Shown here: positions 11,089-13,839 of the stretch, piece after piece
Layout of the letters: every line of letters begins with the position of its first letter
Numbering within the stretch: position 1 is the first letter of the stretch
NCBI GenBank assembly: GCA_000388065.2
Contig: KB932215.1
DNA length: 15,029 nucleotides
Reading direction: 5' to 3' (one strand)
From: Fonticula alba ATCC 38817
Taxonomy: Eukaryota; Protista; Nucleariida
Translations under genes and position numbers: made by a program
Notes under the pieces: generated by a model
Told to the model about the DNA's origin: nothing
The model's database searches: none
The model's input: only the letters and a program-made list of their open reading frames with translations

Positions 11089-11103
11089 TCACAGGTCGTC
11101 GCG
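11089..11103 (-). other. C-terminal KDEL-like tetrapeptide RDDL followed by stop
   Basis: The minus strand reads CGC GAC GAC CTG TGA. This is not a strict match to PROSITE [KRHQSA][DENQ]EL, but xDDL is a known retrieval variant (Trypanosoma brucei BiP ends MDDL). Confidence 0.6.
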
Positions 11104-13839
11104 CAGGGAGAACGTCCGGGGCGGGGCTTCCGGCGCCTTGGGCAGGCCCGGCTGCGGGGCTTCCAGATTGTCCGGGTCGGCCTGGAGCTGCTCCAGGCGC
11201 TGGCGCAGCAGCTCGGAGTTCACCCGGAGAAGGAGCTGCTCCGCAGATCGCAAGGTGAAAATGGAGTGCTTCACCATCAGCGCATGGTAGAGGTTCAGGT
11301 CATCGCCGACGGCCGCCTCGGCCAGGTCGGTCTCAATGCGATCCAGCGAGGCATACTCGTCATCGAGATCCGCACGGTACCGGGCCTGGCGCGCGCCGAT
11401 GTAGGAAATCAGGCGCTTGACCACGGCGATCTCATTCTCCACGGAGAGCGGGCGGCCGTCCAGCAGGCGCAGCGTCACCGCATGGGCGTACTCCGTGTCG
11501 GTGAGGGTGCGGTCGCGCTCGTCCGGGGTCATCTCCCACAGGCGGAAGTAGGCCATCAGGGCCGGGTCCTCGGTCGGCATGCCGGTCCAGTCGACGGTGA
11601 ACTCCGAGTACTCATTGGTCGTGGAGGACATGCTCTCCAGGAAGTTGTCCGGGAAGAAGTTGAACACCGGGTGCGTGCGGGCGATGTCGGAGACCGACAT
11701 CTTCGGCATGGGGACCACCACGGTGTCGGCGTGGTTCTGAAGATGCGGGAGGATGCGGGGGGATACGGGGGGGGGGGGGGNNNNNNNNNNNNNNNNNNNN
11801 NNNNNNNNNNNNNNNNNNNNNNNNNNNNNNNNNNNNNNNNNNNNNNNNNNNNNNNNNNNNNNNNNNNNNNNNNNNNNNNNGCACGCACAGAGAGACAAAT
11901 ACACAGGTGCACGCACAGAGAGACAAATACACAGATGCACGCGCGAAGAGACAAATGCGCGGGCGCATGCGCAGAGAGACAAATGCGCGGGCGCATGCGC
12001 AGAGAGACAAATGCGCGGGCGCATGCGCACACACGGATGCACACAAGAGGCGCGCAAGACAGGAAAAGGCACATGCAAGACACACACAAGCAAGCACAAG
12101 AGACAGAACAAGAAAAAAGCAACATCTGTCAGACACACCACACAGGAGGCGGACCAACGGGCGAAAGGCAGAAGCCAGCCACGCACATCCGAAAAGGCGG
12201 TCCCAATCTCCGACATGAGCACCGCATTGGAGTTGGGCTTGCCGTAGTTACGGAAGAGCATCGACCCGGCCGGGATGTCCCGCAGCGCACGGCACTCCAA
12301 CGAGGCCACCGCCGCCAGGACATCCGCCAGGCGGCTGTAGCTGTCCGGGTCCCGGGAGGCGTCCGTAGCCAGCGTCAGCGTGCAGGCCACATTCTCCACG
12401 GCCTCCTCCAGGCCATCCTCCGGCTGGTGGTCCGGGTCGGCCAGCGCCTCGCCCGAGGCCGGAAGCTCCGCCCCGGCGAACGGGTTCGAGGGCTGGAAGA
12501 GCTCCGCCAGGGGGGCCATGAACTTCAGGAGCTGCGCGTCCTCCAGCGGCGAGCGCGACAGGTCAAACTCGAAGAGGTAGTTCCACTGGACCGACAGGGC
12601 CCAGCGGAAGGCATCCCGAGTGAAGAGCTCCGGCTCGATGACTGCAGCACGACAAGAGGCGATGAGGCCCGGTGAGCGAGAGGCAAAAGGCAGAGGAGGG
12701 GACCGGGGAGGCGCAGACGCAACCCCCGGGGGCGAGAGGGGCTGGGCCTGTCGGCGTGCACATGCGTGGCGGGAGAGGCAACAAAGATGAAGAGAGAGGG
12801 GGGGGGGGGAGGGGAACACACCAACCGGCCGGCCGCTGGCCTTGCGCGTCTCCAGGGCCTGGCGGATCTCGGCGAAGTTCTCCGAGATGTGCTTCTCCCG
12901 CGAAAAGAAGTAGTACCAGGCGTCGGTGCCGGTCAGATCGGCCGCCTCCTCAGCCTCGAAGTAGATCGGCGTCCGGAAGATCTCCGGCAGCGAGTGCAGG
13001 AAGTGATACCTGCGGCCGGACCGCATCGGGGCAAGCATGGGCATAGAAGGGGGCGGGGGGGGCGGGGCGCCCAAGAACATGCACTGCTGTCAGCAAACCA
13101 GCGCCGGCGGGAAGGGGCAGACCCCAGGGCGCGGGGTGCCCCGGCAGGCGAAGGAGAGGCAGCATGGCCAGACGCACCACTTGGAGGAGGGGTCGCTGCG
13201 CTGCTGGATGAGGAAGATGGCCACCTGGTCGGTCAGGGTCAGCCGGTGCTCCGGGGTCAGCTTGATGCCGGCCACGAGACTCGGCTCGAAGATGAGCAGC
13301 GCGTCGGCCGGCACGCGCAACAGCAGGGCATCCGCCTGGGGGGGGGGGTGGAGATCCGGAGGGAGGGACAGCGGCCAGGAGGCACGCGCGCGGAGTTATA
13401 GCAGGTCAGCAACCGGAGACTGATGCCCCCTCCGCCAGCGGGCGGAGGGAGGGAGGCAGACCCGACCGCGGGAGCCACGCACCGGGATGTCCCGACGAGA
13501 GGCCAGCGAAATGCCGCCAATGCCGCCCGGGCCGTGGACGTGCAGCGACACATCCGGCCCGAAGAAGGACCGGGCATCCTTGCCATCGTCGGAGACCGAG
13601 GCCGGCGACAGGGATCCCACCCGGACGCCGGACGCTTGCAGCCAGTCGAAGTAGCCCGACAGCCGGAGGAAGCGCCGCTCGACGTCCGCCGACGGCGAGG
13701 CCGAGAAGCCCATCTCCCGCCCGGTGGGGGCCGTGGAGTTGCCGGGCGCGGCGGAGTCCAGCGCCAGCCCGGGCGCGGCGCTCAGCAGGGTGGCCGCCAG
13801 CAAGGCCAGCAGGGCCAAGACCAGCGCGGGAATCCTCAT
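11089..13839 (-). CDS. Secretory-pathway SET-domain protein of the Rubisco LSMT/SETD3 type (SET + LSMT substrate-binding-like domain), probable pseudo-methyltransferase
   Basis: Exons on the minus strand: 13839-13483, 13335-13178, 13009-12822, 12641-12187, 11736-11089, totalling 1806 nt (601 aa + TGA). Start context is GCCACGATG. LSMT-family landmarks appear in order: YFDWLQASGV, GGISLASRRDIP..LLLRVP..ALL, AIFLIQQR..SSKWYHFLHSLP..TPIYF, FTRDAFRWA, MAPLAELF, RALRDIPAG..FRNYG..SN, DNHADTV, LMAYFRL, VENEIAVVKRL. Confidence 0.85.
11781..11880. other. Assembly gap (100 N) inside the last intron of the SET gene
   Basis: N run flanked by poly-G on the left and a minisatellite on the right; true length unknown. 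Confidence 0.98.
11881..12028 (+). repeat. 28-bp minisatellite (GCAYGCRCAGAGAGACAAATRCRCRGGY-like, at least 5 copies)
   Basis: Units start at 11881, 11909, 11937, 11965 and 11993; the array may continue into the gap. Confidence 0.9.
13762..13839 (-). other. Predicted N-terminal signal peptide of the SET-domain protein
   Basis: MRIPALVLALLALLAATLLSAAPGLA has a basic n-region, a long Leu/Ala h-region and a small-residue c-region. Likely cleavage is near A21/A22 or A26. It is followed by an N-S-T sequon at residue 34. Confidence 0.8.

Follow-up and report, generated by a model that had tools for sequence, protein, structure and literature searches.

H696_05903 of Fonticula alba, a candidate pseudo-methyltransferase of the SETD3/LSMT fold from an unnamed clade with secretory-type signals

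SET-domain methyltransferases are known from the nucleus, the cytosol and plastids. The gene H696_05903 of Fonticula alba raises the question of what becomes of such a protein when its fold persists, its cofactor-binding motifs are degenerate and both ends of the chain resemble secretory-pathway signals. It occupies positions 13839..11089 on the minus strand of the window, the whole 15,029-nucleotide stretch of DNA that was analysed (G000:C15:105783-120811), and its five exons encode a protein of 601 amino acids. A preliminary description had proposed a candidate pseudo-methyltransferase, and this remains the most likely reading, given the register of the motifs, the retained active-site Tyr and Ser-Asn pair, and the intact gene. 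We regard it as somewhat better than an even bet that the protein is a pseudo-methyltransferase that preserves the fold and the substrate groove, has lost the cofactor pocket and is probably resident in the endoplasmic reticulum (ER). As in other proteins classed as pseudoenzymes, the fold is kept while cofactor residues conserved in close relatives are replaced. Judged from sequence, binding of S-adenosylmethionine (SAM) and catalysis have probably been lost, and a binding role has probably taken their place.

All degenerate motifs lie in exon 4, which encodes the C-terminal half of the split SET domain (12187..12641, minus strand; delimited by phmmer, the family profile and exon mapping). 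The features of the putative cofactor site are as follows.

12571..12582, minus strand: N255-Y256-L257-F258 in place of S-R-x-F, from phmmer, column counts and the profile; the Arg (SETD3 R254) becomes Tyr
12490..12513, minus strand: P278-L-A-E-L-F-Q284-P285 in place of P-x-x-D-x-x-N-H, from the profile alignment; Asn becomes Gln and His becomes Pro
12391..12480, minus strand: acidic insertion, approximately residues 289-318, directly after the degenerate NH motif; a gap in all 16 clade relatives
12241..12249, minus strand: N366-Y367-G368 with the active-site Tyr kept (SETD3 Y313)
12226..12231, minus strand: S372-N373, kept
12199..12219, minus strand: L376-M-S-E-I380-G381-T382 in place of L-L-x-D-Y-G-F; Tyr becomes Ile and the adenine-stacking Phe (SETD3 F327) becomes Thr
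13507..13515, minus strand: G109-I110-S111, equivalent by column counts to the GxG loop (SETD3 G105-F106-G107), with Ser for the second Gly

The register of these replacements was established with a family profile hidden Markov model (HMM) built from 100 relatives, with H696_05903 excluded. The profile matched the protein at 248 bits and aligned PLAELFQPSNP to vPlaDmfNhspg with top posterior symbols, so that Q284 falls on the family Asn, P285 on the His, and N287 three positions downstream. A phmmer comparison with human SETD3 (E 1e-17) gave an identical register for the NH motif. The preliminary description had noted that the nearby SN(P) might restore the register of the motif; N287 is excluded as the family Asn by the high-posterior profile alignment, and a Pro also follows it. 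Both methods thus agree with the degenerate motifs as first described, the coordinates and residues given for PLAELFQP, NYG, NYLF and LMSEIGT were all correct, and the alignment columns bear out the retention of the NYG Tyr and of the following SN. The acidic insertion is unique to the Fonticula protein and is predicted to be disordered (predicted local distance difference test score, pLDDT, of 53-54). The Ser in the GxG loop is a tolerated variant within the family, since this column holds Gly in 77, Ser in 11 and Ala in 6 of the 100 relatives.

The expected consequences of these changes can be read from the structure of SETD3 in complex with S-adenosylhomocysteine (AdoHcy), in which E104 and F327 sandwich the adenine, the backbone CO and NH of H279 contact adenine N6 and N7, N278 contacts the ribose O4' and the amino group of the cofactor, R254 and R75 bind its carboxylate, and Y313 touches C8 and the substrate (PMC6400499). 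The N278A and R75A substitutions severely lower the catalytic rate constant of SETD3; SETD6 lacks the Arg of S-R-x-F, and both LSMT and SETD6 retain the NH motif and the Phe of YGF (PMC6400499). In the Fonticula protein the equivalents are G108 for E104, T382 for F327, P285 for H279, Q284 for N278, Y256 for R254 and Y367 for Y313. Proline has no backbone NH. Five cofactor-contacting residues are replaced: Gln (Q284) stands in place of the Asn whose hydrogen bonds hold the ribose and the amino group of SAM, Pro (P285) in place of the next residue, which in SETD3 offers its backbone NH to adenine N7, Tyr (Y256) in place of the carboxylate-binding Arg, Thr (T382) in place of the adenine-stacking Phe and Ile (I380) in place of the Tyr of DYGF. 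An acidic loop of 30 residues, predicted to be disordered, is inserted directly after the NH-equivalent motif. On the substrate side, Phe258 and Tyr367 of the lysine pocket and the substrate-binding domain are retained. Under the proposed mechanism, productive SAM binding would be lost and the groove could still clasp a peptide or protein client, so that the protein would serve the ER lumen as a binder or an adaptor.

The extent to which these positions are constrained was determined in an alignment of 101 sequences, comprising H696_05903 and its 100 relatives, of which 16 belong to the same clade.

Asn of NH: N in 92 of 100 relatives, Q in none; N in 16 of 16 clade relatives; Q284 in H696_05903
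Arg of SRxF: R in 81 of 100 (Y in 14); R in 15 of 16 clade relatives; Y256 in H696_05903
Adenine-stacking aromatic: F in 86 of 100, F or Y in 91 of 100; F in 13 of 16 clade relatives; T382 in H696_05903
Tyr of DYGF: Y in 15 of 16 clade relatives; I380 in H696_05903
Active-site Tyr: Y in 88 of 100; Y in 16 of 16 clade relatives; Y367 in H696_05903, kept
Asn of SN: N in 84 of 100; N373 in H696_05903, kept
His of NH: H in 74 of 100, all of them among the 84 outside the clade; in none of 16 clade relatives (A, T, S, M or Y at this position); P285 in H696_05903

Two histories are superimposed in these columns. The loss of the His is an old trait of the clade, compatible with a contact to the cofactor that is made through the backbone only, whereas the changes at the Asn, the Arg, the Phe and the DYGF Tyr are specific to Fonticula within the clade, and both F382T and Y380I are unique or almost so among the 100 relatives. 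The loss of the NH motif claimed in the preliminary description therefore stands for the Asn, which all 16 clade relatives keep, and has to be restated for the His, which none of them does. The replacement of SRAF by NYLF was likewise correctly identified, including R256Y, but this change alone is not diagnostic, because Tyr occupies the same position in 14 other family members that keep the NH motif, and SETD6 does without the Arg.

These comparisons also bear on the possibility that H696_05903 has remained an active methyltransferase whose cofactor pocket is unusual: Gln284 would stand in for Asn and Tyr256 for Arg, and other residues or the inserted loop would offset Phe382Thr and Tyr380Ile. 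Such an enzyme would account for the retention of Tyr367, Asn373, Gly381, Pro278 and an acidic residue at position 281, for the confident fold and intact gene, and for the absence of the Arg from SETD6 (PMC6400499) and from the 14 family members that have Tyr there and keep the NH motif. It is harder to reconcile with a Gln that no relative places at the Asn position, with a Pro at the next position that abolishes the backbone NH donor, with the severe impairment of SETD3 by N278A (PMC6400499), and with the coincidence of four or five changes to the pocket in a single protein, the 16 clade relatives having kept the residues concerned. We consider an active enzyme of this kind, the main rival reading, unlikely, although it deserves to be kept in view.

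The pseudo-methyltransferase reading presupposes that the fold has been preserved, and the structural model supports this. AlphaFold2, supplied with the 101-sequence alignment, returned a model with a mean pLDDT of 81.3 and a predicted template modelling score (pTM) of 0.82, in which low confidence is confined to the linker after the leader, an N-terminal insertion (residues 78-107), the acidic insertion (residues ~289-318) and the last ten residues. Foldseek matched the model to SETD3 (3e-19), LSMT (1e-16), SETD6 (1e-12) and PAP7 (3e-10). Superposition on SETD3 and pea LSMT, which the preliminary description had put forward as a check, gave VIA-align Z scores of 26 for SETD3 (435 aligned residues) and 24 for LSMT, over nearly the whole length of the protein (residues 1-579), with a further Z of 24 for SETD6. 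The C-terminal substrate-binding-like domain noted earlier was recovered by Pfam above its cut-off.

11323..11604, minus strand: residues 431-524, the Rubisco-LSMT substrate-binding domain; PF09273 scores 28.3-31.4 bits (cut-off 21.6)

The generic SET model of Pfam, PF00856, did not match H696_05903, either exon by exon or as a whole protein. Taken as modelled, the architecture is the complete one of SETD3, LSMT and SETD6, with a split SET domain, an inserted helical iSET region and the C-terminal Rubisco-LSMT substrate-binding domain. At the substrate pocket, F258 aligns to Asn256 of SETD3, the residue that recognises histidine, and is a lysine-pocket Phe of the LSMT/SETD6 type; in LSMT and SETD6 a Phe at this position makes a cation-pi contact with the lysine (PMC6400499). 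The substrate side thus looks like a retained lysine-type pocket in this alignment.

Word-index searches of protein sequences matched only H696_05903 itself, whether queried with exon 4, the whole protein or the clade alignment, while an exhaustive HMMER search gave 159 matches at E <= 1e-3, seven of them at or below 1e-10. The top matches came from Parvularia atlantis, Lithocolla globosa and Capsaspora owczarzaki, and true SETD3 ranked behind them. In a FastTree tree of 101 sequences and 418 trimmed columns, H696_05903 groups with Parvularia, Lithocolla, Capsaspora (CAOG_04380) and one further sequence (support 0.984), within a clade of 17 members (support 0.989) that also includes Stenamoeba, Pellita, Clydonella, Clastostelium, Cavenderia (DFA_00957), Heterostelium (PPL_06965) and Tieghemostelium (DLAC_01885). 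The clade therefore spans Capsaspora, nucleariids and Amoebozoa, dictyostelids among them, and none of its members has an annotation beyond hypothetical or SET-domain protein. It is distinct from the SETD3 clade (support 0.996), which excludes H696_05903. On this phylogeny H696_05903 is not a SETD3 orthologue but a member of an unnamed clade, and what is new in the sequences is both this SETD3-distinct, secretory-type clade and the Fonticula-specific loss within it.

The same tree allows another explanation to be weighed, namely that the whole secretory clade is non-catalytic, the NH His having been lost in its common ancestor, and that the Fonticula protein has simply eroded furthest within an ancient family of pseudoenzymes. 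The His is indeed absent from all 16 clade relatives and present in 74 of the 84 sequences outside. Lithocolla (P0003) moreover has N-H in place of S-R and a His in place of the motif Asp. Across Amoebozoa and opisthokonts, however, the Asn (16/16), the Arg (15/16), Tyr367 (16/16), the DYGF Tyr (15/16) and the Phe (13/16) have been maintained to a degree that is hard to explain without a cofactor, and the SETD3 His touches the cofactor through its backbone only (PMC6400499). A clade-wide loss of catalysis accordingly appears improbable to us. The Lithocolla globosa protein shares W-N at the W-S position with Fonticula and keeps the Asn and DYGF, its His residues standing at the Arg and motif Asp positions; erosion of S-R-x-F may predate Fonticula within the nucleariid lineage. 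Outside the clade, the signal-peptide-bearing protein P0045 (Aphanomyces astaci H257_15895) is also degenerate, with N-H replaced by T-P, the Arg by H and the active-site Tyr by L, and P0009/P0152, metagenomic sequences that bear signal peptides and end in KDEL, keep the NH motif but have no active-site Tyr. On these sequences, SET-like pseudoenzymes of the secretory pathway may have evolved on more than one occasion.

Motif changes of this kind could also result from a decaying gene, or from an annotation or assembly artefact, the odd motifs then reflecting neutral drift or a wrong exon model. The structure of the gene was examined in this light. The ATG starts at 13839 and the stop codon is at 11091-11089, and the protein search with the exon translations retrieved the deposited protein P0001 at 100% identity. 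The translation of each exon stretch is an exact substring of P0001.

13483-13839, minus strand: exon 1 stretch, residues 1-119
13180-13335, minus strand: exon 2 stretch, residues 120-171
12823-13008, minus strand: exon 3 stretch, residues 173-234
12187-12639, minus strand: exon 4 stretch, residues 236-386
11737..12186, minus strand: intron 4, 450 nucleotides, with a 100-N assembly gap and a 28-bp tandem repeat
11092-11736, minus strand: exon 5 stretch, residues 387-601

Codons 172 and 235 are split by exon junctions. The donor sites read GTGCGT, GTGCGT, GTGTGT and GTGCGT; the acceptor ends in CAG at each of the four introns. Whole-protein analyses used the deposited P0001, which matches each exon translation, rather than an independent concatenation of the exons. 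No exon is missing at the 100-N gap (11781-11880), because the gap lies inside intron 4 and homology is continuous over the exon 4/5 junction in both phmmer and the family profile. Directly adjoining the gap is the tandem repeat (28 base pairs, 5.3 copies, 90% matches, 11881-12029), which may have caused the break in the assembly. A 663-amino-acid open frame (11089-13080, minus strand) spans introns 3 and 4, whose lengths (180 and 450 nucleotides) are both multiples of three; the N gap aside, neither intron contains an in-frame stop, and retention of either preserves the frame. A hidden intron within the acidic insertion was considered and rejected, as the sole GT...CAG candidate, read by eye, is 58 nucleotides long and would shift the frame.

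The hypothesis of decay or artefact can point to the assembly gap within intron 4 and to the leave-one-out test over the 29 conserved columns of the 17 clade members, in which H696_05903 mismatched 10 columns, the most of any member. These mismatches concentrate in the cofactor site: six of 10 fall within the three motifs (S255N, R256Y, D281E, N284Q, D379E and Y380I), against 4 of 19 columns elsewhere (one-sided Fisher p = 0.047). The branch length of the protein from the clade root, 1.8, is ordinary for the clade (range 1.3-2.0), the structural model is confident, the reading frame is open through all five exons, the splice sites are canonical and homology continues over every junction, the protein still has its N-terminal leader and its C-terminal tetrapeptide, and a change from Asn to Gln requires at least two base changes. 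On this sequence evidence H696_05903 is a real, intact gene, as the preliminary description had concluded from its open reading frame and clean splice sites, and the pattern resembles a targeted reshaping of the cofactor site more than decay across the protein; a decaying or misassembled gene is very hard to credit.

Other members of the family in the same genome point in the same direction. A profile search of the genome found five other Fonticula genes that match the family profile. Four of them (L001/L032, L033, L038 and L040) have an intact NH motif; the fifth, present as the fragments L037/L041, keeps SRAF and YG...FGF, and its alignment ends just before the NH position. Base composition is thus not the cause of the motif changes, because other Fonticula family genes show an intact NH motif. 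L033 (G000:C8:1660235-1664278) is a separate SETD3-type gene with RQN, PLWD, NH and YG..SN. An apparent absence of any other family gene from Fonticula, obtained when the genome was searched with a single bird SETD3 sequence, was a false negative, as the family profile found L033 and three more paralogues.

The remaining element of the reading is the cellular address of the protein, for which both termini and one potential glycosylation site are relevant.

13768..13839, minus strand: signal-peptide-like N-terminus, residues 1-24, with a hydrophobic core at approximately 4-20 (Kyte-Doolittle maximum 3.0 over 12 residues)
13732..13740, minus strand: N34-S-T, the sole N-x-S/T sequon, just past the hydrophobic leader (pattern scan of P0001)
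11092..11103, minus strand: C-terminal R-D-D-L, a candidate ER-retrieval signal in the light of clade and Fonticula ER-protein termini

In the model, residues 5-20 of the leader form a helix followed by the low-confidence linker. Signal-peptide-like N-termini are found in 12 of the 17 clade members versus 11 of the 84 sequences outside (p = 4e-6), and C-termini of the form [ED][LI] in 9 of 17 versus 8 of 84 (p = 1e-4); the clade termini include HKEL, HAEL, KVEL, KQEL, KSEL, GDEL, EGEL, RDEI and RDDL. Retrieval signals in Fonticula itself were assessed from homologues of ER markers, which end in HTEL for BiP (L010), RDEL for calreticulin (L020), RSEL for GRP94 (L024) and HGDL for PDI (L029). 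None of these four ends in a textbook KDEL or HDEL, and the signals are varied; a terminal -DL is already in use by a core Fonticula ER enzyme, because PDI ends in HGDL. A KDEL-receptor gene is present in the genome (PF00810 at G000:C6:1284794-1285596, 71.5 and 51.7 bits). Human ER proteins use REDL, RTDL, QEDL and KEDL, so that xxDL signals are documented (PMC2140024). Since clade members mostly have a signal-peptide-like N-terminus and a KDEL-like C-terminus, the ER or the early secretory pathway is the most likely residence of the clade, and ER residence of H696_05903 itself may reasonably be inferred. The only two cysteines of H696_05903, C321 (12382-12384) and C351 (12292-12294), are conserved in all five members of the opisthokont subclade and lie on predicted strands 319-325 and 346-353; a C321-C351 disulfide could form and would fit an oxidising compartment.

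Several points weigh against a non-catalytic, ER-resident protein. RDDL is non-canonical and falls outside the PROSITE pattern, and KDDL in a mammalian reporter gave ER localisation that was only partial (PMC2140024). The leader, a 17-residue hydrophobic core after M-R, was judged by hydrophobicity only. Gln can in principle form the hydrogen bonds of Asn, and the change from Arg to Tyr is found in active SETD6-type enzymes. The enrichment of mismatches in the motifs is only marginally significant, and the case for purifying selection consists of the intact reading frame, the ordinary branch length and the confident fold.

One part of the original proposal does not survive the comparison with the clade. 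Loss of SAM binding had been said to fit a compartment with no well-established supply of SAM, but the 16 relatives, in which the same address signals are enriched, keep the Asn (16/16), the Arg (15/16), Tyr367 (16/16) and the DYGF Tyr (15/16). The loss is not accounted for by the compartment alone, because relatives with the same address signals keep the cofactor residues; if anything, their sequences suggest that SAM is available to them. This leads to a broader and more tentative proposal, to which we give rather less than an even chance: that amorphean protists share an old, undescribed family of SET lysine methyltransferases of the ER or early secretory lumen, of which the Fonticula copy has become a non-catalytic client binder. 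If this is true, the conserved pocket would imply a lumenal supply of SAM and lumenal methylation of protein lysines, and would raise the questions of how SAM enters the lumen and what its protein substrates there are. A literature search of partial coverage returned no description of a SET-domain methyltransferase or family addressed to the ER lumen, which is weak evidence of novelty. A candidate pseudoenzyme of a single lineage is by itself of moderate interest; as a natural loss-of-pocket variant, however, the Fonticula copy could be contrasted with Capsaspora CAOG_04380 or a dictyostelid homologue, which would part catalytic from scaffolding roles. Capsaspora and dictyostelids are experimentally tractable.

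Among known systems, human SETD3, the actin His73 N-methyltransferase (PDB 6ict, 6mbj and 3smt), is both the best PDB sequence match (E 1e-17) and the best structural match (Z 26). The two proteins share the N-SET/SET/iSET/C-SET layout and the active-site Tyr (Y313 = Y367). H696_05903 differs in lacking the His-recognition Asn of SETD3 (F258), its Trp274 (A280) and its cofactor residues N278, R254 and F327, in carrying a signal-peptide-like leader and RDDL, and in belonging to a separate, well-supported clade. The SETD3 signature itself, formed by the Asn of R-Q-N and the Trp of P-L-W-D, is absent from H696_05903 and is carried in Fonticula by L033. Pea Rubisco LSMT and human SETD6, both lysine methyltransferases, share the fold (Z 24), the Pfam C-terminal domain and the lysine-pocket Phe (F258); they are, however, chloroplast or cytosolic/nuclear enzymes that keep the NH motif and the Phe of YGF, whereas H696_05903 lacks these and bears putative secretory signals.

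For a scaffold role of the fold, a precedent is PAP7, an LSMT-type protein (Z about 23) that serves as a structural subunit of a larger complex. It is plastidial and its LSMT active-site residues are reported to be conserved (PMC11561172), for which reason we rejected it as a precedent for a pseudoenzyme and retain it as one for a scaffold. METTL9, a histidine methyltransferase of the seven-beta-strand type with a signal peptide, goes into the secretory pathway, and its action depends largely on protein binding rather than on catalysis (PMC12313917); its fold is unrelated, it is catalytically competent and it has no KDEL-type signal. The true relatives of H696_05903 are the members of the unnamed clade. 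They have in common with it, in most members, a signal-peptide-like leader and a KDEL-like end, and further the absence of the NH His and the consensus positions of W-S-R-x-F and P-L-A-D-M-F-N; they keep the Asn, the Arg, the DYGF Tyr and mostly the Phe, while Fonticula alone has Q, Y, I and T at these positions, together with the acidic insertion of 30 residues.

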